64,000 nt of DNA, from contig JAIVFI010000001.1 of NCBI GenBank assembly GCA_025558095.1, forward strand, positions 1,302,001 to 1,366,000. The letters are read 5' to 3'. The notes under the pieces were generated by a model that saw only the letters and a list, made by a program, of their open reading frames with translations, was not told the origin of the DNA and did no database searches. A program made the translations under genes and the position numbers. The DNA comes from Hyaloraphidium curvatum SAG 235-1 (lineage: Eukaryota; Fungi; Monoblepharomycota). Shown one piece after another: positions 1,668-50,936 of the stretch. Numbering within the stretch: the stretch's first letter is position 1; the number at the start of each line of letters is the position of its first letter.

Positions 1668-2148
1668 TCAGGATTCGGTCAACGCCTTCAGCTTTGCGTC
1701 GTCGGCACAGTCAGGAACGTCCACAAGCCGCGCAATCTCCCCTTGCTGTTCCGTTCGTGAGGACAAGGAGCGAATGCTCATGACGAAGCAACCCACTGCT
1801 CCCCACTTGATCAGAGTCGGTACCGCGGTTCCTTTTACTTCCGCCAAATGCCTGTAGTAGTTGCCGGGGTCCTTCCAGGTCGGCTTGTCGCCTCCGTCAA
1901 GCAGCAGCAAGGTCGCGTCGGGAGACAGCGCTGCCCGGATCGTAGGCTCCGACCGTCGGCAGTCCGGGCACCACTGTCGATCGTGAGACGCACATGCAAT
2001 GTGCAGTGGTCCGAAGACCGCGTACCGATGCCCCGTTCGCGTCCCGGTGGCCGTGAAGGTAGACAAATACGGGGCCGGATTCGGCGAGCGAGGCGACGAG
2101 CGGCAGGAACCGCTCCCGCTCGGCGTAGGGGAGAAGGACGTCCGGCAT
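1668..2148 (-). CDS. TXNDC17: Thioredoxin domain-containing protein 17 (TRP14)-like, probably 3 exons
   Basis: MPDVLLPY..VFVYLHGHRDANGAS | WCPDC..WKDPGNYYR..AVPTLIKW | ..ALTES*. The WCPDC active site and VPTL motif are typical of TRP14. Confidence 0.85.
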
Positions 2149-2319
2149 CGCTCGGAAAGGAGGGATGAAATGCGTTTTCCCACTCAAGTGGACGGTCAAT
2201 TTGGCTCCCGGAGTTCGGAATGTCACCCACAGACACGATCACTCCTCCACCTCTGACGAGATCGGACGCCAATTCGATGACATCAGGGATCGTAAGCTAA
2301 GATTCGTGCTATGGTAAAA

Positions 2320-3567
2320 TTAACCAGATGCTGCTGCTGCGGTACCGTTCTTCAGAACGGAATCGCTTAACCACTTTTTCACCTGGGCGACAAAGATCTT
2401 TCGCGCCGCCAACGGATTCTTGTTTCCACACTGCCACTTGATGCTAGCCAGATGGATGTTCCCTACCTGCAGCCGAGGAACGTCGTCCAAGTGTCCAAAC
2501 TGGCATTTGACCACGTGCTGAACGCCAGCTGCCGTCGCGAATGCGATGGCCTGGTTCAAGTCTGCTCGCTGATCAAATGGTCGATCAAGAGCAATCTTGT
2601 ACTTGACGTCTCCGACCGCGACGCATTTCGTTTGATGCTTGAAGACGAGGTCTGGATTGAACCCGTACTCTTTGCCGCGGCTGTCCTTAACCATCGTGCG
2701 TGACTTCGATACGCTTATGCCCAGATGCGACCACAATGTCTTCCTCAGAATGGCGCGAAGTCCGTCCTCAGCAATCGCTGCGGAAGGCAGAAGGAAGCAC
2801 CAGCTGATCGTGTCTCCGAACTCAGCGGATCGTGAGATGGAGTCAAGAATGTGACAAGCAAATGTCCAAGCGGTTTCATAATGGGCCATCCGGCGGCTCG
2901 GTGGAACGTCCCTGTCTCCAGGCTGAAGATCTCCGACGCCGTCGAACTTTTTCAGTAACCCTTGCGCGTCAGAAGCATAGACTCGTGTCCGCGGTCCGCG
3001 AAGTTCCGCGACGACTTCCAGCGCCGCTCGCAAAACCCTGTTCACAGCAGTGTTTGGGGACTGCACATCCGCTGTGACTTTTGGCTCCAAAACGCCTTCA
3101 TAAAATCTTCTAGCAACGTGCATGGGATCTAGAGCGCCGTTCCACGTTTCCCCGACGACTTCGGCATCTCGGTAGTCACGGAAAAGAGGAGAGTATAGAA
3201 GAAGCTCCAGTTCGTCCAGAAACCATCTCAAGATGAGTTCCACGAGGCCGCAGGCTGGCGCGGCCTTGAGTTCGGTAGGCTCGAAGCTGGGTACGAACTT
3301 GGCCACGCCGGCGAGGTACAGAAGATGGTTCAGAGGAATCTTCGAGCTAATGACTATGGTCCGTTCGCCTGCACCGATGAGACCGACCACGTTCATCGCG
3401 CTGAGCTGCCATTTGCCATTGTCCAGGCGTTCGATGTTGACACGGCGGTCCTCCTTGAAAGTCGTTGCCCTCTGGAGGCCATCGACCATCGCCTTGAGCG
3501 CCAGACCCTCAAATTCGTCAATATCAATCTCGAAAGGCCGCCCATCGTCCTGGAAAGGGCGTTTCAT
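2320..3567 (-). CDS. mcrC: McrC-family PD-(D/E)xK nuclease (type IV restriction McrBC subunit), intronless
   Basis: 415-aa ORF. N-terminal NVVGLI..IVISSKIPLNHLLYL and NTAVNRVLRAAL segments; C-terminal NPDLVF...VGDVKYK...ADLNQAIAFA catalytic motifs of McrC. Adjacent to an McrB GTPase gene. Confidence 0.85.
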   Translation of the reverse strand: MKRPFQDDGRPFEIDIDEFEGLALKAMVDGLQRATTFKEDRRVNIERLDNGKWQLSAMNVVGLIGAGERTIVISSKIPLNHLLYLAGVAKFVPSFEPTELKAAPACGLVELILRWFLDELELLLYSPLFRDYRDAEVVGETWNGALDPMHVARRFYEGVLEPKVTADVQSPNTAVNRVLRAALEVVAELRGPRTRVYASDAQGLLKKFDGVGDLQPGDRDVPPSRRMAHYETAWTFACHILDSISRSAEFGDTISWCFLLPSAAIAEDGLRAILRKTLWSHLGISVSKSRTMVKDSRGKEYGFNPDLVFKHQTKCVAVGDVKYKIALDRPFDQRADLNQAIAFATAAGVQHVVKCQFGHLDDVPRLQVGNIHLASIKWQCGNKNPLAARKIFVAQVKKWLSDSVLKNGTAAAASG

Positions 3568-3796
3568 TTGTCCAGGGGTACGCTACTGCGGGCTGCCACG
3601 GTCCCGCGCGCGCAGCGTGGCGCCGGCGTGCACATACATGTACATCACCACGCGCCTGCCATACTCCGTCTTGGGTTGATGCGTTGACGTCGAACAACGC
3701 GGCAGCTTGTTCGTTTCAGCACCCGTGTTTTATTCGCCCGCGAACGGTCGCCGGAACGCGCATCGAACGACAACCAGTTTTGCGTCTCCCTTGGGA

Positions 3797-4766
3797 ATGG
3801 AGCCATTGCCGGGTAGTGACGGCGCATCAGAGTCCTCTCTTAAACGATCAGTGGATCGCAGTGGCACTACTGATGAGCCGCGGAAGATCCAGCGGACGAA
3901 CGGACCAGGCGGCGCTGCGGTCAAGGAGGACCAAGGACAGCCCCCTGTCCCCGCTGTTCCCGGCAGAAACTGGAGGGGTTTCCCTATAACTTTTGATGGG
4001 CTACTGTCAATCGTGGCCTCGGATCTGTCGGACGAAGTTGTGGACGATATCATCAATGGCGAACCGTTCAAGAGGAAGGACATTGATCAAGTCCGGCTTT
4101 TGAGGGTGTCGAAAAGTGCTGTTAAGGATGCTTATCATCGCGTGTTTCACGACATGTCTTACTTCACCCTTGAGCGCGAAATCGAAAGCAATTGCTTTGC
4201 GTTCCTGGCCCAAGAAGCTCAATTATTCCATCTCCACATGTGGGGCCGTGGAGGGCTGAGAAGCCAAGGATGGGCACGCTTACTGCATCTCTTCAAAGGT
4301 GAAGGCCTGGATGTAGTATGGCACAGGAAGCTCCCAGGCCCAGACAAGCTCATCATCGAGTACATTCAAGTTGCTGTTTCCCAATCACATTGCCTTCGCA
4401 TGACTAGCAGACCATGTTCTAGACAATCACATTGCCTTCGCATGACTAGCAGACCATGTTCTAGACAAAGCAAAGCTCTCTGGTCTTTTTCTTGTAGATT
4501 TGAATTTGGGGATGCTCGATGAGGAGGTTCTTGCTTCCAGTCTGTCTAAGTTACCTCAGTTGCAGCAACTGTCCTTGAAAGGCAATCACTTCAAGAATGG
4601 GATGCTGCCATTCTATGCTCCAATTGGTGGAATGAAACACTTGACCTACCTGGGACTCCCTAGCTCATGGGAGGAGGACAGTGATAAGCTTATTGGATTA
4701 CTGAATGAATTGAAACAACTGGAATTCATTGTCACTCCTATCTTGAATGCTTTGTCGGCCAGGTAA
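3797..4766 (+). CDS. Putative N-terminal region of the McrB gene: NLS-like, F-box-like and LRR-like segments, either spliced or disrupted
   Basis: ATG at 3797. KR-x11-RKIQR (3842-3895); F-box-like SDLSDEVVDDII..LLRVSK..AYHRVF; LRR-like LSKLPQLQQLSLKGNHF / MKHLTYLGLP / LKQLEFI (4500-4763) in the same frame as McrB. Contains a frame break and a TAA at 4764. Confidence 0.5.
4382..4465 (+). repeat. Exact 42-bp tandem duplication
   Basis: caatcacattgccttcgcatgactagcagaccatgttctaga at 4382-4423 and again at 4424-4465. Confidence 0.95.
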
Positions 4767-4817
4767 TTTTTTCAATGTGTACTCGATGCATCGCCTGCGT
4801 TAGCCAACCTTTCTACC

Positions 4818-6065
4818 ATGTACCTTGCAACACCTTCCTTGGAAATGCCAGCAGAGTCATTTTATGGGTCAAAGCTCGAGGACATGAAGCAACGATGGCC
4901 CGAGCTGTACTTTTCAGGTTACAACAGTGCCATCAAGCATCTGAACGAACCAGTTAAGGTGCTGAATGAGACTTCAGTACTGGACACGCAAGATCCAGCA
5001 GTAACCAGTTCAAATGAGCTAGACATGGGCTTGTATGAACGCCAGGATCAGCATCAGCTGCTTGCAAACCTGGCAAATGTTCGGGTGGACAAGTTCAAGG
5101 CATGCATTGACATCCTGTGCAGCTCGCGACCAAACTTACTCCTCAGTGGACCACCTGGGACAAGCAAAACGTTTCTGGCAGAGAAGCTGACCGAACACTT
5201 CTTTCGAAGTTCGGAAGAGCGGAAGCAGCGGGTGACATTCGTGCAATTCCATCCCTCGTACACCTATGAGCAGTTTGTCGAAGGCTTATACCCGCAACTC
5301 GTGGATGATAAAGTGAAATTCGATGTTCGTCCCGGGAAGCTAAGGCTTGCTGCGGAGTGCGCGAGAGTGAACGCAGCTGAGCGGCCAGGTGCCATCCTCG
5401 TTATTGACGAGCTCAACCGTGGAAACGTTGCTAAGATCTTTGGTGAACTCTTGTACCTCATCGAATACCGTGACAAGGAGATCATGCTCCAGCATTCCGA
5501 CCACTCTAAGGATTCGGAGCGCTCCAAGGACCCTCCGAACTCCTTTTTCTCGATCCCCAGCAATCTGGCGATCATTGCGACCATGAACACGGCCGATCGC
5601 AGCATCCAGTCGCTCGATGCAGCAATGCGGCGGCGGTTCAACGTCGTGGAGCTTCCTCCGGACGCGGACGTGCTCGAGAGTTTCTATGGAGACCGAGCGA
5701 ATCTCTTGCGTGGTGCGGAACTGGTGGCGCTGATTCGTGGATTCAATCAGCTTAACGAACAACTGAGGACCGATCTATCGGAAGATCAGCAGTTCGGCCA
5801 CGCGAATTTTCTCCCGCACCCAAAGTCGGACGTAAAGGGGAAAGGGCGAGAGGGAACGTCCGACTATGAGCAGTTCGGTCCCCAGCAACTTCAGCGTCGT
5901 TGGAAAGAGATCATCTACCCGCAACTCCGCGAGTACTTCCACGGCAATCGAAACAAGAGCAAGCTTGATTCCTACACTTTTTCTAGCTTTTGGGGAAGGA
6001 GCAAATGGGTCGAGGGATGGACAGAGCCAAAGACAAAGCAGGGCTCTGGTCGTCGACAAACTTGA
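4818..6065 (+). CDS. mcrB: McrB-family AAA+ GTPase (type IV restriction McrBC motor subunit)
   Basis: Walker A LLLSGPPGTSKT, FVQFHPSYTYEQFVEG, Walker B LVIDELNRGNVAKIFGEL, the McrB NxxD signature MNTADRS, DAAMRRRF, QFGHANFL and W..IIYPQLREYF. Confidence 0.93.
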   Translation: MYLATPSLEMPAESFYGSKLEDMKQRWPELYFSGYNSAIKHLNEPVKVLNETSVLDTQDPAVTSSNELDMGLYERQDQHQLLANLANVRVDKFKACIDILCSSRPNLLLSGPPGTSKTFLAEKLTEHFFRSSEERKQRVTFVQFHPSYTYEQFVEGLYPQLVDDKVKFDVRPGKLRLAAECARVNAAERPGAILVIDELNRGNVAKIFGELLYLIEYRDKEIMLQHSDHSKDSERSKDPPNSFFSIPSNLAIIATMNTADRSIQSLDAAMRRRFNVVELPPDADVLESFYGDRANLLRGAELVALIRGFNQLNEQLRTDLSEDQQFGHANFLPHPKSDVKGKGREGTSDYEQFGPQQLQRRWKEIIYPQLREYFHGNRNKSKLDSYTFSSFWGRSKWVEGWTEPKTKQGSGRRQT

Positions 6066-6138
6066 ATGATGTTTCCCGTGCAAACATTTGCATTGCAGCC
6101 AATACATTCCCTGAAACCGCGTCTAAAACCGCGATCGT

Positions 6139-9100
6139 CTAATCGGCGAGCTCGTCCCAAGCCCCGTCGCCGGCGCCCGAATGTCCGTGGAGATCGTGGT
6201 CGTCGCCCAGCACGACAAACTCGTCCAGCTCCATCCCCGCGGTCGGCAGTTCCAAGTGGGATCCGGGAGCCTGCATCAAGTGTCCGTCGTGCACCGCAGG
6301 CCCGCCGTGCGGACTGAACTGGCCGCTCGGGAAAAGCAGGTCGTCGTAGGTCTGCATCCGGGGCGGCGTCGTCGACATGGAAACCGAGCCCGACGCGACA
6401 CCGCCCGCCGGAGTCGTTTCTTTGGGCGGCTGCGCTGCCTTTGGCGACGAGACTCGCGAGATCGGGTCCGAGCCGCCGGCATCCGGAAGGTCCTCCGCCG
6501 ACGCCGAAGCCGTCGTTCTCCGCCGCCGCCTGCCTCCGCCCTCCTCGTACGAAACGACGGGGTCCAGCTTCTCCATCTCCTGCATCTTCTTGAAGCGATC
6601 GGCGTACTCGGGCGGCAGGTCGACGTCCTCGATCCCGCCGTCCAGGTCCTCCTCCTCGACGTCACGGAGCAGATCGTCGTCGTCGTCGTCCTCCTCGGCG
6701 GCCGCATCCCCGGGCTCAAAACCGCGGTCGCCACCGCCCTGCACATCCGGTTCCGACGGTTCGCTCGCCGCCTCCCCAGCGTCCGCCAGCCCCACCTGGG
6801 CCAGGCCTTCCTGATACTCGCCGTCGTCGCTCTCGTCTTCTTCCTCTTCGGCGAGACCCGCGGGTGCGGCTTCCTCCTTCATGCTCCGCATAGCGTCGTC
6901 CGCGGCCGCTCTCCGCCTCCGTCCGGGCACCACGCCGGCGTCCTCGCCGGCGTCCTGAAGCAGATCCGCGAGCTCGTCTTCAGAAACAGCGAGCGGCTCC
7001 TCCTCTCGCACGGGCGGCGGCTGGGGCGCGTGCGGGAACGACGCCTCGGACCGCGCGCTCCCCTTCTCGCTCGCCGCTTCCTCCGCCGCGCTCGCCGTAC
7101 CGGGAGGCATGAAGGAGCCCGCGGGCCGCGCTACGCGGCCCGGTGCCCACCGGGAAAAGCTTTTTTTCACCTGCACCTTGGCCATGTTCTCGAACTCGAG
7201 CTCCCAGCCGGGCCGCACGCCGAGGCCGGCGGCCTGGTGGAAGACAAAGTTGAGCAGGTCCACGCGGAAGAGGGAAAAAACGTATTCCGAGGTCACGTCC
7301 TCCTCGCCCGCCGAGATGACGGCGCCGTTGGCGGGCGAGGCGCGGACCTTGCTTCCGGCAGGGTTGGAGTGCGCGAGGACGACCCGCGAATGCTATGCGA
7401 TTGCTCGGCGTCAGCCAAATGGAGCAGCGAGACGAGATTGGGCTACCAACGTCGTAGTACCACTGCTCCTTGCCGTAGATCGCGGCGGGCGGGTTCGAGT
7501 CGCCCATGGCAAGCGCGACACCAGCAACACGTCCTTCAATGGCTGGAAAATGAACGCCGAGAGGTTGAAAAGCCTGAATGGAGTGATCGAAGAGTGCTAC
7601 TCACGTCGCTGGTTGATCAGGTTGACAACGCTCGTGCACGTGTTCCCAACTCCAATGAGCACGGCCGGATGGAGCAAATCCCCGTTCGGCCTGATCCACT
7701 CGACGTCAGAACAGCTCGCCGCGCGGCAGGAGATGTCAATCAACTCACTCGATCAGCTCGTCCCAAATCCCGCCCAGCAGTTCGTCCAGCAGCTGCATCC
7801 TGTCCAGCCTCTCCAGCCCGGACCGCTTCATCTCGTCCATGTCCGCCTCGACGACAAACACCAGCACGTCCTCCGGGTCCACGTGCGTCGTCAGCGCCTT
7901 GAGGAAGCTCACGGTCGGGTCCAGCAGGTGCGAAGACCCCCGCTCCAGCACGTTCTCGTACGGGTCCAGGACGGCGCGCACCGAGGGCGACTCGTGCACG
8001 AAGATGATGGGGTGCCGGCGCGCACGCGGCTGTTCCCAGCGCTGCCCGCCCGCGCGGGGGAGCGAGGCGACGTCGCCAAAGACGTGGATGTCGCCGTGGA
8101 AGCGGTTCCGGATGTGCGGCGAGAGCGAGGACTCGTCCCAGCGGAAGTGGACGAAGCCGAGGGCCGTCGTGAGGAGCATGTGCCGGTAGACCGAAAGAAC
8201 TTCTGCAGAGATCGCAAGAAACGAATCAGAATCAACGATTGGGTGGCAGACGGCCGAGAAAACCAACCCTGCATGCTCCACGCGGCCGCCTTGTAGACGG
8301 TGCGGTCCCTCTTGTTCCTGTCCACGCGCATGTGGTGCCTGGGCAGCATGCTCTCCCAGTAACGGCTCTGGATCCTCACGACCTGCTCCACCACCTCGTA
8401 CGCCTTGCGGCACGGCACGCCGACGCGCCCGTAGTCGAACGACGGCACGGGGTCGCCCAGGAGCACGCTCGTTACCGCCGCCATGGACAGCGACACGCTC
8501 CGCGCGTTGTACCCGCCCTCGAGCGCCACCACGACCCGCCCGCCAGCAAGGGAAGACAGCATGTAGGTCATGTGCGCGTAGCCGAACGGCGTCACCCGGC
8601 ACCCGCCCAGCGGGTCGTCCATGGCCGCGTCGAAGCCGGCCGAGATGATGACGAGCTCGGGGTTGTACTCGGTGGCGATGGGCATGACCACGCGCTGGAA
8701 GGCGTGGATGTAGTCCGCGTCGCCGAGGCCGCCGCCGCCCTCCCAGGGCACGTTGACGTTGAACCCCGTGCCGGGGCCCTCGCCGATGGCGTTGGCGGCC
8801 GCGTCGTTCGAGTTGGGGTAGAACTGCATGTTGTCGTATCGGTGGATGGAGATGTAGAGCACCGCGGGGTCGTTGAAGAAGGCGTTCTGGGTGCCGTTGC
8901 CGTGGTGCACGTCCCAGTCCAGGATCAGGATCCGGCGCAGGCCGTGCTTGGCCTTGAGCACGTTGGCGGCCACCGCGACGTTGTTGAAGACGCAGAAGCC
9001 CATGGGCTCGTGGGCCTCGGCGTGGTGGCCGGGCGGGCGGACCACGCAGACGCCGTTGTGCAACTCGCCGCGGGCCACGCGCGAGCACATCTCGATCACG

Positions 9101-19763: not shown

Positions 19764-21223
19764 TCAGTCGAAAGGCATGGGCCTGTTGGCCGTGCTGGAA
19801 ACGAACCGCGGCATCGGCATGGGTCCGGCGTCGGGGTTCCTCGGCTTGCGAGCGAGGTAGCCCGTCTCTGCCACCTTCCCCCTCGGGCCGTCCACCGGGC
19901 TAACCGCCCCCCCCGCCGCCCCCTGCATCCACGGCCCCGCGACCCCGCCGCCCGCCTCCCTCTCCCTCTCCCTCGCCGCCGCCAGCCCCGCCGCGGCGCT
20001 CGGCACCCGCATGTTGCAGCACTCGGGCGCCTCCTGCCCCATGGCGTGCACGTGCGCGTGGCCGCAGTCCCCATCGAACCGCGCCAGGAGCGCCGGCTCG
20101 CCCGCCGCGCTCGAGGGCGAGTCGAACGGCAGCGCGGCGCCGAAGAGGAGGTGCTGCACGATCGGGAGCTTGCCGAGCACCTCGGCGGCGTACATCCTCG
20201 CCAGGCCCTCGGAGACCTTGCGCCAGTTGGGCACGCCGGAGATGTCGTCGAGCAGGGGCGAGTGCCACCGCAGGCTCGGCGCGCCGATCTTGGTCGCGTT
20301 GGCGTGGCGGACCATGTCCAGGTAGAGGTACGCGCGCGAGAAGCCGTCCAGGATCTCGGCCGAGTGGATCGATTTCGGGCGGATGCGCGGGTGGTCCGAG
20401 AGCTGCGAGGCGCCGAAGAGGAAGGGGAGGAAGTGGTAGTCGTCCAGGCCCCAGACGCCGTGCGAGCCGGCGGGCTCGAGCCAGTAGACGGATTGGAGCG
20501 AGCGCATCAGGAGCACGTAGCGCCGGAAAACGAGCAGAACGAGCTGGGCGCCGTATTGCCGGGCATCCACGAAGCCGGACGCATGGAGGCAGTAGCTGGA
20601 AGGAGGTGAAATGTTAGACGAGAGAGTTTCTGCGCATGGCCAGAAAACGCTCACAGGAAAAGGAGGAAGTGCAGCTCGTGCCCCGTTCCGTAGTCGATCC
20701 TCTGAATGTTGCCGAAACTGTTTTCGAGGTACTCCGCAGCCTCGTCGGCGAGTCGGCCGGCCGGGACACCCAGGGAGCGAACCAGCTCGGGGGCCCGTTC
20801 CCGCACCCTGCCCAGCCAGCCGCGGAAGCTCGGGTTCCCGAACCTGCTCTGCCCGCCTGTCTCCGGCGCAAAGTCCGCCATCCACGCGTCGAGCAGGTCC
20901 AGCATGTCGAGCAGCGCACGGACCGGGGCTGCGCACTCCTCGACTTCCACATCGGAAACGGCGCAGTTGCGCACCGACTCGGCGAGCAGCTCGACGAAAC
21001 TGAGAATGGAGGCGTGCGCAGGCGAGGACTGGAACGCGTCGAGGTCGTCGCGCGTGAGGATCCGGCGCGAGAGCGCGGCCGGCCGCGGCGACGACGAGGC
21101 GTGCGCGGGGTTCTCCCCGCCGTGCGCCTCCGCGGGCCCGCCTTTCGCGCCCGCTCCGACGCTGAGATCGTCGAACCGCGTTGCGAGCGCGTCGCCGTTG
21201 GCGGCTGCCACGTCGGACGTCAT
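19764..21223 (-). CDS. Protein phosphatase 2A activator PTPA (Rrd1/Rrd2 family); 2 exons
   Basis: SRFGNPSFRGW, SFGNIQRIDYGTGHELHF, YWLEPAGSHGVWGLDDYHFLPFLFG, EVLGKLPIVQH. Confidence 0.95.
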
Positions 21224-21294
21224 GGCTACACGCGAAACTGAACTCCTGTCTTCCGCGTTCTTCCTCTGAGAGGGGCTCGTGGGCGCGAACGAGT

Positions 21295-22476
21295 ATGTCT
21301 CGCAAACGCGACTCGCGCGGCCGTTTCGTCTCGTCCCGGCAAGTGAACGATGATTCCGAAGGCCTACGAGCCGAGATCGCCGCCCTGCGCGCGCAGCTGG
21401 CCGAGCGGGACGCGGAGCTCGCCAAGGAACGTGCCTCCCGCAAAGATGCTGAACGCGCCCTGGCCGATCTGAGGGCCCGCGTCCCGCTGCCTCGGCTGCC
21501 GACGGAAGTTTGGGAGCAAGTGTTCCAGCTCCTGAAGGGCGCATTGCGGGTCCGCAGCGCCGCCAAGCTCATGGCCACCTGCAAGGACCTTCTCCCAATC
21601 GGGAGACAGGTCATCTACCGGGGTCTCATCGTCGGCATGGACGTGGAACCTCGGAATATCACGTCCACCATGCCTCTGCACCTCGTCGGCAATCTTGATC
21701 TGCGGCACGCCAACGGGCTGCGAGGACTTACTGTTCTGGAGCTCGTCAATCGTTGCCGCAACATCCAGGCCCTCCACCTGCCCGGCGCGCTCCTTGCCGA
21801 TCACGGGCCGGACGATCTCTGCACTGCGCTTCTGGGTCTGCGCAAATTGAAGAGTCTGAACATTACCCATTTGCCCTGGAGGCTTCCCGGCCTACGTTTT
21901 CCATCGTCGCTTGAGGAACTTGACATTTCTCTGTCGTACGGCGCGTCCTCCGGATCCAGGCTCGCATGGCTCGTGGACGCCGTGGAGGCCGCGCCGGTGC
22001 TGCGTCGTTGGTCGGTGAAGACGTTCTGCCTCCCCGACTTTGCCGGTCACCCTCGCGCTGCGAGGACCTTGGACGAGGTCTGGTGGTACAACAAGAGCCT
22101 GGATGACCATCCAACTCTCGAGCCCTGGTCCATCTCCCTTGTCGCGCACTCTGGGCTCACCCTGAGGAAGGTGTACGCCGAGCGGTGGCACGATTTCCTG
22201 GCCGTTCCGTCCGTCGAAGCGGTGGAGATGGGACTGGCTGGTCGGGCCATGGGGCCCGGCGAAAGGTTCTGGGAGGTGGTCCTCCCGCCGCGGCTCAAGC
22301 TGCTCGAGTTTGCCAAGCTTTCCGTCGCCGGCCCGATCGACCGGGACGAAGTGCGGCTGTGGCTCGAGAAGAGGCCGGAGCTCCGCGTGCGCGTGCTCTT
22401 CACTTACGCGACCGATCTGTGGGGTTCGTTCGACCAGGTAGAACTTGTCGATGAATACGGCATTGGATTTGATTAG
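21295..22476 (+). CDS. Coiled-coil plus F-box-like/LRR-like protein, intronless
   Basis: PRLPTEVWEQVFQLL..LMATCK F-box-like segment, then LRR-like NIQALHL / KLKSLNI / SLEELDI. Confidence 0.65.
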   Translation: MSRKRDSRGRFVSSRQVNDDSEGLRAEIAALRAQLAERDAELAKERASRKDAERALADLRARVPLPRLPTEVWEQVFQLLKGALRVRSAAKLMATCKDLLPIGRQVIYRGLIVGMDVEPRNITSTMPLHLVGNLDLRHANGLRGLTVLELVNRCRNIQALHLPGALLADHGPDDLCTALLGLRKLKSLNITHLPWRLPGLRFPSSLEELDISLSYGASSGSRLAWLVDAVEAAPVLRRWSVKTFCLPDFAGHPRAARTLDEVWWYNKSLDDHPTLEPWSISLVAHSGLTLRKVYAERWHDFLAVPSVEAVEMGLAGRAMGPGERFWEVVLPPRLKLLEFAKLSVAGPIDRDEVRLWLEKRPELRVRVLFTYATDLWGSFDQVELVDEYGIGFD

Positions 22477-48550: not shown

Positions 48551-49696
48551 CTAAAAGAAATCCTCCTCCTCCTTGACCAGCTCGATCTTGACCCCCGGCA
48601 CGGACTCCCAGAACCTGACCTCGGGGTCCGGATTGTCGTGCATGAAGAGCAGCAGCTCCCTCAGCACGAACTGCACCTCGATCGCCCTGGCCCGCTCCGC
48701 CCTCTCCGCGAGCATCCGCCGCACCGCCTCCCTCTCCTTCTTCCGCAGGTCCAGGTCGTTGGGCCTGATGCTCAGCCTGCGCAGGTTGGGCGGGATGCCC
48801 GAGGCAAAGGTGGCTTTGGTGGCGGCGTCGTTGACGTGCAGCTCCTCGACGGAGGGGAGCGACATGGCCTTCCCGTAAGCGGCAGGGAGCGTCTTGTTGC
48901 CGGCAACGTAGTGCTGCATGAACCCGAACGCCAGGACGCGGGGCCGGAACCCGGGATGGGCCAGGAGGCGCCCCAGCATGTCGAAGCGGACGACGGTCTC
49001 GACGAGCGAGAGCTTCGCGGCGGCCGCGGGAAAGTCCGAGGGGCCCATCTGCCAGACGCAGTCGATCGATTTCCAGTCTTCGAGGTCCGGGAGCGCGTCG
49101 ATCTGGCGGACCAGCGGGGTGACGTCGACGCCGTTGCCGAAGGTGCAGAGCCGCAGGGTGGTCAGGCCCCAGGGGAGCACCAGGGCGGCGATCTTGTCCG
49201 CGTCGGACGGCTTCCAAGCGATGCCGAGGCTTTTGAGCACTTGGGCGCCCGCCAGGAGCGTCGAGAGGCGGTAGGCGGCCGTGTCACCCCCGACTTCCAC
49301 GGTGACAAAGAGCTTCGTGAGCCCCGGCGCACAGCGGCCGAGGATGTCGAGCTGGAGCTCGTCGGCTCGTGCATCGCCCTTGAGCCGCAGCTCGAGGTCG
49401 CGGACGTGGCGGAACTTGCCGGGTGCGACCTCGTCTCGTGCCACGCCCTCGAGCCAGGCCACGTTCATCCGCGAGAGGTCGAGCGTACGCAGGAGGACGG
49501 GCAGGCCGAGCACGTAAAGCCGCTTGCTGGCCTTCATGAAGCGCAGGACGGCGTTGCGCCGGTAGTGCACGTCCAGCAGCGGGCCGAAGAAGCCCGGCGT
49601 GGGGTCGAGGGCTTCGGGCACGAGCTCGGCGATGCGCGTCACCACGTGGTCGGGGAGCGCGGCTAGAGAATCCGCAGGCACGTCCTGGGTCGCCAT
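48551..49696 (-). CDS. F-box-like/LRR-like protein, intronless
   Basis: LAALPDHVVTRIAEL..FMKASKRLYVLGLPVLLRTL, then LRR-like VRDLEL / LTKLFV / LTTLRL / LRRLSI. Confidence 0.65.
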   Translation of the reverse strand: MATQDVPADSLAALPDHVVTRIAELVPEALDPTPGFFGPLLDVHYRRNAVLRFMKASKRLYVLGLPVLLRTLDLSRMNVAWLEGVARDEVAPGKFRHVRDLELRLKGDARADELQLDILGRCAPGLTKLFVTVEVGGDTAAYRLSTLLAGAQVLKSLGIAWKPSDADKIAALVLPWGLTTLRLCTFGNGVDVTPLVRQIDALPDLEDWKSIDCVWQMGPSDFPAAAAKLSLVETVVRFDMLGRLLAHPGFRPRVLAFGFMQHYVAGNKTLPAAYGKAMSLPSVEELHVNDAATKATFASGIPPNLRRLSIRPNDLDLRKKEREAVRRMLAERAERARAIEVQFVLRELLLFMHDNPDPEVRFWESVPGVKIELVKEEEDFF

Positions 49697-49808
49697 CTCT
49701 GTGCTGGAGGTCGTTTGGAATGGTGATGGCTCGCGCCGGCGTTGTCGCGCGTCGGCGGGCCGCTGCCGGTAGTACGAGCTGCCGCCGGGCGCGCAGACGC
49801 TGGGCAGC

Positions 49809-50936
49809 ATGCGCCACGTCGCCGTGTTCCCGAACGACGCGCGGGCAAAGCCGACGCGGACGGTCGAGCTGCCGCCGCTCGAGGCCGCCGAGAAGATGTA
49901 CGAGGAGATCGAGGGCCCCGGCGGTTTCCGCATCGTGAAGCGCAGGCTGGGCGGCTGGCCGGCCGGCAAACCGCGCAAGTACGTGCTGCCCGGCGAGGAC
50001 AAGGGGGTGCACAACACCGAGGAGCCGGACCAGCCCGGCCACCGTTGGGGCGGGTGGGAGTTCGTCTACGGCCCGATCGACGCCGACGAGGCGTCCGTCG
50101 CGCGGGGGATCCAGCTGGACCTGTACATGCGCCCGCTGAACGCCGGGATCACCCTCCACTGCCGCTCCTCCGGGCCGACGCTCAACAGGAAGGAGAGCGC
50201 CGACGCGAAGATGAGGTTCTTTGACCTGGCCGTCGGCCAGCTCAAGGATATGGACTCGTACTACGTCCTGTCGCCCATGGCGCTGGCCAGCGCCAACCTC
50301 TTCCACAAGGACCTGCCGCGCTTCATCGCCACAATGGACTCGATCGAGCCCGTGCTGCGCGCGAAAGCACTCGTGCAAGACGTCGCGCTCTTCCTCATGC
50401 GGCGCGGCGAGGCCCACGAGGCCGCTGGCCACGCGGACCGGGCCATTTTGGACTACTTCGACGCGTTCATGCTGGTCGACGCAAACCGGAGCAAGACGGC
50501 GGCGCCGATGGTCGCCACGGCGCTCAACTACCTCGGCCTGGCGCTCAAGCGCGCCGGCCGTTTCGACGCCGGACGGGAGTACTTCCTCAAGCTGTTCCAC
50601 AACCTCTCGCGCGCCCGCGGGCTGGACGCCGACGCGCGCAAAACGAGCAACCGCCAGAGCATCAGGGACCAAAAAGCACAGAAGCACGCGCCGCTGGCCC
50701 AGTGCCACGGGTGCGGGGTGTCGAGCGCGGAGCTCGTCTCGGGGACCGTGCCGCCGGGCGGGAAGCGCAGGGAGCTCAAGATGTGCTCGAGGTGCAGGAG
50801 CGTCATGTTCTGCTCGCAGGAGTGCATCACCGAGGCGTGGGGGAGGCACAAGGAGGCGTGCAACCGCGTGCGGGCGGAGAGGGCGGGCGTGGTGGGCGGC
50901 GCGGGCCAGGAGCCGGGGGCGGCAGAGGGGGCGTGA
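49809..50936 (+). CDS. MYND zinc-finger protein with TPR-like helices
   Basis: CHGC..LKMCSRCRSVMFCSQECITEAWGRHKEAC. Confidence 0.8.
   Translation: MRHVAVFPNDARAKPTRTVELPPLEAAEKMYEEIEGPGGFRIVKRRLGGWPAGKPRKYVLPGEDKGVHNTEEPDQPGHRWGGWEFVYGPIDADEASVARGIQLDLYMRPLNAGITLHCRSSGPTLNRKESADAKMRFFDLAVGQLKDMDSYYVLSPMALASANLFHKDLPRFIATMDSIEPVLRAKALVQDVALFLMRRGEAHEAAGHADRAILDYFDAFMLVDANRSKTAAPMVATALNYLGLALKRAGRFDAGREYFLKLFHNLSRARGLDADARKTSNRQSIRDQKAQKHAPLAQCHGCGVSSAELVSGTVPPGGKRRELKMCSRCRSVMFCSQECITEAWGRHKEACNRVRAERAGVVGGAGQEPGAAEGA

Follow-up and report, generated by a model that had tools for sequence, protein, structure and literature searches.

The stretch of DNA analyzed here, referred to as the window, comprises 64,000 nt of the genome of Hyaloraphidium curvatum, a chytrid-like fungus belonging to the Monoblepharomycota (contig C1:1302001–1366000 of a 31.9-Mb, 55-contig assembly) and contains, near its start, a McrB-type GTPase gene and a McrC gene arranged head-to-head, with sequence resembling leucine-rich repeats (LRRs) upstream of the GTPase. 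McrBC is regarded as a prokaryotic defence. Eukaryotes were left out of the McrBC census of Bell et al. (2024; PMC11090510), according to which no McrC homologs associated with eukaryotic McrB have been reported so far, and our full-text literature search found nothing on LRR-McrB in eukaryotes. An earlier note on this DNA had joined the first open reading frame (ORF) on the McrB side to the GTPase by removing two GT..AG segments as introns; these segments are included among the features of the locus, which are as follows (coordinates are those of the window).

2320–3567, minus strand: McrC homolog, an uninterrupted 415-codon ORF with a conserved PD-(D/E)xK-type motif (FNPDL...GDVKYK)

3568–3796: spacer of 229 bp from McrC to the first ATG on the McrB side, with the genes head-to-head; presumed to function as a bidirectional promoter

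3797–4522, plus strand: first ORF, frame 2, 241 codons plus stop, with a low-complexity N-terminus followed by an LRR-like part

3842–3895, plus strand: KR-x11-RKIQR, a motif resembling a bipartite nuclear localization signal (NLS), read directly as residues 16–33 of the ORF starting at 3797

4299–4497, plus strand: proposed intron 1, 199 nt; former coding sequence containing the frame change (about 4363–4385), not an intron

4382–4465, plus strand: exact 42-bp tandem duplication (copies 4382–4423 and 4424–4465), with a frame-0 TGA in each copy (4401–4403 and 4443–4445)

4446–4763, plus strand: LRR-like open frame in frame 0, which is the GTPase frame, parted from the 4818–6065 frame by a single TAA

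4763–4927, plus strand: proposed intron 2, 165 nt; present in RNA contigs, with a weak coding signal in frame 0

4764–4766, plus strand: in-frame TAA, with no other stop separating the LRR frame from the GTPase ORF

4818–6065, plus strand: McrB-type AAA+ GTPase ORF, intact, 415 codons, with homology starting from residue 87–93 (about nt 5076)

The GTPase ORF, from the ATG at 4818 to the stop at 6065, sits inside a 432-codon open frame that follows the TAA at 4764–4766. Its product contains a Walker A motif (GPPGTSKT), a Walker B motif (IDELNR), the MNTADRS signature, and an RRRF motif, and it matches the AAA_5 domain model from Pfam (E 2.7e-20). Solved McrB structures were significant hits as well (PDB 6UT3, 4.3e-31; 6HZ4, 3.5e-30), with the Walker A and B, MNTADRS, and arginine motifs aligned. 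The AAA+ core, the motifs, and the similarity to McrB structures together identify the protein as a McrB AAA+ GTPase. Because its score against the NCBIfam model for E. coli McrB equivalogs (NF008457; GTPase part only) was 104.5 bits and thus far under the cut-off of 637 bits, we refer to it as a member of the McrB family and not as an equivalog. A match to nSTAND3 in Pfam (E 0.005) was under the cut-off of that family. No N-terminal reader fused to the window GTPase was found with Pfam models, and between this GTPase and the LRR frame upstream lie a frameshift and stops that the RNA contigs retain. The McrC ORF matches the McrBC model (PF10117) with an E value of 2.2e-21 and 76.6 bits (cut-off 23.9), and its PD-(D/E)xK-type motif is invariant across three eukaryotic McrCs (FNPDL...GDVK.K), which together place it in the McrC family; it had no match among PDB sequences. 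We found no database record of the 415-aa McrC and no annotated protein for the window GTPase or for the first ORF piece; this gap may be due to the collection and does not prove that they are absent. The McrBC locus (window 2000–6000) has a GC content of 46–57% and a GC content at third codon positions (GC3) of approximately 0.55–0.63, compared with 65% GC for the genome and a GC3 of 0.94 for an HSP70 exon; these low values are consistent with foreign origin or with low expression.

Intact relatives of this gene pair are found both in the same genome and elsewhere. On contig C10 of H. curvatum (C10:312538–316511), an uninterrupted 793-codon LRR-McrB ORF, annotated as an "AAA domain-containing protein" of 755 aa (P0121), lies head-to-head with a McrC paralog. 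Identity to the window is 61% for the GTPase and 44% for McrC, and the LRR region of this paralog passes the Pfam thresholds; we consider this pair the strongest candidate for an LRR-McrBC module that functions in a eukaryote. A second intact pair is present on Logan contig L009 of sample SRR26194948 (6570–10424), where the genes for an 807-aa LRR-McrB (P0129) and a 434-aa McrC are divergent; here the GTPase and McrC are 43% and 37% identical to those in the window, respectively, and the LRR region again passes the Pfam thresholds. Because the neighbouring genes on L009 include ankyrin-RING and F-box-like genes, we assign it to a eukaryote; no synteny with the fungal loci was seen. The divergent McrC/McrB layout is thus repeated, with spacers of about 330–470 bp in the C10 pair and 126 bp in L009. 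A structural model of residues 150–470 of P0129 consists of alternating strand-helix repeats (pLDDT 61, moderate confidence) and matches the LRRs of NLRX1, NOD2, NLRP, and ribonuclease inhibitor (Foldseek E 4e-10 to 1e-7). A third H. curvatum paralog (C5:865690–868094) combines many ankyrin repeats with a McrB-like AAA+ domain that is 33–39% identical to the window GTPase by two measures; it has a GC3 of 0.80 and no adjoining McrC, with just a weak McrC-like match (E 8e-5) about 19 kb off. H. curvatum therefore encodes three McrB paralogs with eukaryote-type repeats, two with LRRs and one with ankyrin repeats, and two of the three are paired with McrC.

The nearest prokaryotic GTPases, the metagenomic P0122/P0123 group, share 47–52% identity with the fungal copies. 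In one of these relatives (L025:4299–8293), an 858-aa SRA_ScoMcrA-McrB is followed by a shorter second McrB of 472 aa in an operon, which lies downstream of two helicase-like genes. The intact LRR-McrBs on C10 and L009, the structural matches of the LRR model, and the SRA reader in the nearest prokaryotic kin show that, within the family, a eukaryote-type LRR really has replaced the McrB sensor. The earlier note had proposed this replacement for the window gene itself and had suggested a search for F-box-LRR-McrB paralogs; intact LRR-McrB relatives do exist beside McrC, on C10 and L009, with no Pfam F-box match in P0121 or P0129, and at the window locus the idea of a working fusion is not supported.

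Judged by similarity searches, the LRR-like coding sequence upstream of the window GTPase is real. A phmmer search with the first piece of the first ORF, run exhaustively over 1.84 billion representatives, gave a single match (P0218, E 1.6e-4), which is a 1519-aa protein built of FBXL/RPS2-type LRRs, and residues 75–150 of the first ORF align to four of its repeat units. The language-model neighbours of the window piece are LRR families without exception, at a similarity of just 0.84–0.86. The frame at 4446–4763 matches the LRR of the C10 paralog (BLASTP 7e-4), it resembles the LRRs of P0121 and P0129 (p 0.002 each in composition-preserving shuffles), and a two-sequence hidden Markov model picks it up weakly. 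The LRR-like repeats that had been noticed in the McrB reading frame are thus confirmed. None of the window pieces reaches the Pfam LRR threshold (best LRR_8 score 15.9 bits, cut-off 27; LRR_8 and LRR_4 sub-threshold in 4446–4763), and positions 3797–4297 match no Pfam family even at E ≤ 10. A "GEGLD" resemblance spanning 4299 is not significant alone (p 0.14–0.26), tblastn of the paralog N-termini against 3500–5100 gave noise only, a word search with the 167-aa first piece gave no match, and an AlphaFold2 model of 3797–4519 from a single sequence was useless (pLDDT 34.6). Because searches of the H. curvatum genome with the paralog LRR and with the first piece revealed no host look-alikes, the label "host-type" for these repeats rests on fold and family and not on a donor gene.

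The LRR-like sequence is interrupted at three places. The frame-2 codon-usage signal of the first ORF persists to about 4390, fading near 4381, and the remainder of this ORF up to the TGA at 4520 is junk; the frameshift between frame 2 and frame 0, the frame of the GTPase, falls in a zone at about 4363–4385. When the GTPase frame is translated from 4368 with stops written as X, it yields a gapless alignment to an LRR unit of P0129 that crosses the TGA, the position of which corresponds to a basic residue in P0129. We infer that this TGA arose from CGA. With the TAA at 4764–4766, all three independent lesions fall within the N-terminal part of 1,021 nt that precedes the GTPase ORF, and none is found in the 2,496 nt of GTPase and McrC. 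By our own arithmetic, this skew over a total of 3,517 coding nt has a p value of about 0.02 under uniform decay, which indicates either that the motor and nuclease are still under selection or that the LRR part mutates faster.

Transcribed sequence from the locus was found in X1, the sole public run with the stretch, which is kept as contigs and whose RNA label is a guess. A 12,189-nt contig aligns to window positions 2026–4411, and the contig sequence preceding this alignment is identical to window 1944–1973, so that 1974–2025 is missing. The missing segment is a canonical 52-nt minus-strand intron (GTACGC...CTCAC...CAG), removal of which completes a thioredoxin-like ORF with the motif WCPDC. 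Because the contig lacks this intron, 2.3 kb from the proposed donor at 4299, we consider X1 to be derived from RNA. The gene concerned is TRP14/TXNDC17-like and encoded on the minus strand, with its ATG at 2151 and its first intron at 2025–1974. The same contig crosses the donor at 4299 unspliced and continues up to 4411, and another contig (4439–6500) runs unbroken and without joints through the acceptor at 4497, the in-frame TAA, and the whole of 4763–4927. The contigs break at the 42-bp tandem duplication only, the junction of which is bridged by a short contig (4397–4453). Therefore, 4299–4411, 4439–4497, and 4763–4927 are kept in sequences from which the control intron is gone, and at the level of contigs the RNA evidence speaks against splicing of either segment. 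Of two short local contigs within proposed intron 1, the one made of repeated words reaches a depth of 813 and the one at the duplication junction 433, compared with 290 for the downstream contig, which means that this segment is at least as abundant in RNA as its surroundings. Over 2026–4411 and 4439–6500 the contigs match the window at every base, with no differing letters and no indels. The locus is transcribed, but its main transcript retains both proposed introns and so does not give rise to the 634-aa fusion.

The splice rules of the genome point in the same direction. In the HSP70, tubulin, and CCT genes of H. curvatum, matched one exon at a time, 31 introns could be inferred, which have a length of 50–77 nt (median 58), a G at the +5 position in every case (31/31; GTGNGT or GTRAGY), a CAG end in 29 of 31, and mostly a CTSAY-type branch motif 10–30 nt before the acceptor. 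Neither proposed intron conforms to the corresponding rule (donor GTNNGY with +5 G, approximately 50–80 nt, branch motif, YAG acceptor). Both are, at 199 and 165 nt, longer than typical introns, as the note had itself pointed out, both donors lack the +5 G (GTGAAG for intron 1, −0.2 bits, compared with 3.3–13.1 bits for the inferred introns; GTAATT for intron 2, 3.9 bits), and no branch motif was found within 60 nt of the acceptors at 4497 and 4927. The acceptor at 4497 is a TAG with a good pyrimidine tract (4.4 bits); the acceptor at 4927 scores 0.7 bits, and a better AG, out of frame, lies at 4917. The frame arithmetic of the splice proposal is correct (502 + 265 + 1135 nt = 634 codons; the joined form was used for this calculation only, and its pieces were otherwise searched separately). 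However, about 53 other GT..AG pairs for intron 1 and 38 for intron 2 restore the frame, and an in-frame solution is therefore expected by chance. Both segments also retain a coding signal, which we measured as codon log-odds of family coding frames versus off-frames, with stop terms omitted, and judged by dinucleotide-preserving shuffles. It is present at 4301–4381 in frame 2 (p 0.0013) and at 4365–4496 in frame 0 (p 0.0003), whereas in the GTPase frame 4767–4925 has a weak one (p 0.03), and per codon the signal inside the proposed introns equals that in the proposed exons.

Taken together, these observations suggest that at the window locus a duplicated eukaryotic LRR-McrB/McrC module of H. 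curvatum is probably decaying. The ancestral gene would have been a single intronless ORF encoding a low-complexity N-terminus, an RNI/NLR-type LRR, a linker, and a McrB AAA+ GTPase, and it would have been transcribed divergently from the gene for McrC, a PD-(D/E)xK nuclease. Its LRR would then have been uncoupled from the GTPase by the frameshift near 4363–4385, the TGA at 4401, later copied to 4443, and the TAA at 4764, in an order of lesions that we infer. The product of the first ORF would end at 4520 as an N-terminal fragment of 241 residues, and translation of the GTPase would have to begin internally or on a transcript that starts farther downstream, giving a McrB without sensor. E. coli McrB-S is a short McrB product that lacks the N-terminal target-recognition domain and is made from an internal in-frame start in an intact gene. 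Whether the window GTPase and McrC remain useful as a comparable sensor-less McrB is, in our assessment, about evenly balanced; it might associate with McrC or form mixed assemblies with the LRR-McrB encoded on C10, whose GTPase is 61% identical. Otherwise, the whole window copy would be an early-stage pseudogene. The window GTPase is like McrB-S in consisting of the GTPase only and being encoded beside McrC, but its putative product would derive from what is left of a disrupted gene.

Several considerations weigh against a decaying duplicate. The intact ORFs of the GTPase and McrC fit poorly with a dead gene, and ribosomes scanning from a transcript that starts near 3700 would not reach 4818. 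The contigs are blind to minor isoforms, transcript ends, and strand, so that a rare spliced form is possible, and the RNA nature of X1 hangs on one spliced control intron. The splice model was drawn from GC-rich housekeeping genes. Finally, CpG depletion had to be rejected as evidence of decay. The observed/expected ratio of CpG is 0.15–0.69 over 4299–5095, with TpG and CpA in excess, but the LRR-coding part of the intact C10 paralog is depleted too (0.47), and depletion is therefore not in itself a sign of decay. Both GTPase parts, both McrCs, and the rest of the window have ratios of about 1.1. The loss of CpG is thus restricted to the LRR-coding parts of the two paralogs, which bears on the possibility that the LRR part mutates faster and suggests either that methylation drives mutation locally or that the sensor diversifies rapidly.

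Decay could also have gone further than in a duplicate that has lost its sensor part. If the whole locus, i.e., LRR remnant, GTPase, and McrC, were a neutral and recently dead pseudogene pair, the intact ORFs would simply not have been hit yet, and the three disabling lesions, the recent exact duplication, the GC3 of 0.55–0.63 compared with 0.94 in a host housekeeping gene, and the lack of a retrieved annotated protein for the GTPase or McrC would all be accommodated. We regard such a pair as unlikely given that the catalytic motifs are all retained, that transcription reaches contig depths in the hundreds, and that uniform decay would seldom put three lesions into 1,021 nt and spare the 2,496 nt of GTPase and McrC (p about 0.02).

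The model from which this analysis started, in which splicing removes the segments 4299–4497 and 4763–4927 and yields a 634-aa NLS/F-box/LRR-McrB that acts with McrC as an NLR-like sensor, is very improbable. The intactness of the GTPase and McrC, the viability of a fused architecture in the intact relatives, the preserved frame, the partial donor fit of AAG/GTGA and CAG/GTAA, and the good acceptor at 4497 speak in its favour. It has to contend, however, with RNA contigs that are unspliced at both segments though the neighbouring intron was removed, with donors that lack a +5 G seen in all 31 inferred introns, with segments 2–4 times the observed lengths and a better out-of-frame AG at 4917, with the dozens of GT..AG pairs that restore the frame by chance, with a coding signal that persists in both proposed introns, and with the failure to find an F-box. 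Moreover, searches yielded no annotated protein of 228–1388 aa that contains the window GTPase, yet they yielded that of the paralog. That errors of assembly or sequencing account for the frameshift and stops, in what is really an uninterrupted LRR-McrB gene like that on C10, is hardly credible, even though the relatives are uninterrupted and long-read assemblies can hold indel errors, because over 2026–4411 and 4439–6500 the X1 contigs reproduce every base, among them those of the frameshift zone, of the duplication junction, and of the TAA.

Compared with prokaryotic McrBC, as known from E. coli and from Thermococcus gammatolerans McrB (6UT3 and 6HZ4), the fungal proteins are alike in having Walker A and B motifs, an NTAD-type signature, and arginine fingers, in having a partner with a McrC family domain and a PD-(D/E)xK motif, and in being encoded by adjoining genes. 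They differ in that the genes are nuclear and divergent rather than operonic, and in that no modified-base reader is present and LRR sequence takes its place. The bacterial SRA-McrB operons, in contrast, carry an N-terminal SRA_ScoMcrA domain that binds 5-methylcytosine and a second McrB. The pairs on C10 and L009 share with the window locus the head-to-head arrangement and the position of the LRR N-terminal to the GTPase, but in the window the LRR region is shorter and broken. As in the NLR/STAND proteins NOD2, NLRP, and NLRX1, an RNI-type LRR, judged from the model of the P0129 LRR, is joined to an oligomerising P-loop NTPase. In these proteins, however, the NTPase is a NACHT or NB-ARC domain and the LRR is C-terminal, whereas here the NTPase is an AAA+ McrB, the LRR is N-terminal, and the effector is a nuclease encoded by a separate gene. 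The LRR-McrBs therefore fall outside the NLR/STAND class, which is defined by a NACHT or NB-ARC domain and a repeat sensor C-terminal to it, and the likeness is functional only.

From what is known of the family, the intact module would consist of a hexameric McrB GTPase with LRR sensors, stimulated by McrC, that licenses the McrC nuclease, and we speculate that loss of the SRA reader may spare methylated host DNA. The repeat-bearing McrBs of H. curvatum, together with the LRR-McrB/McrC pair that it has in common with a second eukaryote, represent a bacterial immune motor that has been re-armed with an NLR-type sensor. A bolder proposal is that LRR-McrB/McrC pairs serve early-diverging fungi, and at least one further eukaryote, as a functional module of innate immunity. 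In this module the motor of a bacterial type IV restriction system would have exchanged its 5-methylcytosine reader for an NLR-type LRR, and a GTP-driven nuclease would be licensed in the nucleus by a ligand other than DNA, such as a protein. The window copy would then serve as a sensor-less, McrB-S-like regulator or hetero-oligomer partner of the C10 protein or be rescued by minor splicing; we offer this tentatively, as a possibility that we think is rather doubtful. The window copy itself offers a snapshot of turnover, in which the sensor part decays first and the motor and nuclease stay intact. It also argues for caution in annotation, as frames should not be rescued by ad hoc GT..AG pairs.

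The N-terminal elements that had been proposed alongside the LRR fared less well. An F-box had been suggested from resemblance to two F-box/LRR genes of the window, and with it a possible link to SCF. Pfam models identified no F-box at E ≤ 10 in the window pieces, including 3797–4297, and none in P0121 or P0129, and BLASTP of the upstream piece against the window ORFs at 21181–22476 and 48551–50017 gave nothing (E ≥ 1.8). The SCF link is thus left unsupported. These two ORFs, on the plus and minus strand, respectively, have no Pfam F-box or LRR match at E ≤ 10, and their F-box/LRR label is unverified. The bipartite-NLS-like motif KR-x11-RKIQR is present as described, although it is a weak motif that is near chance level: the loose bipartite pattern occurs in 5.7% of shuffles of the 167-aa piece and in 80 of 272 (29%) same-sized chunks of the long open frames of the window, and nuclear import is a prediction only. 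At the same N-terminal position, P0129 has two nucleoplasmin-like KRK-x10-KKKK motifs that are far stronger than that of the window protein.

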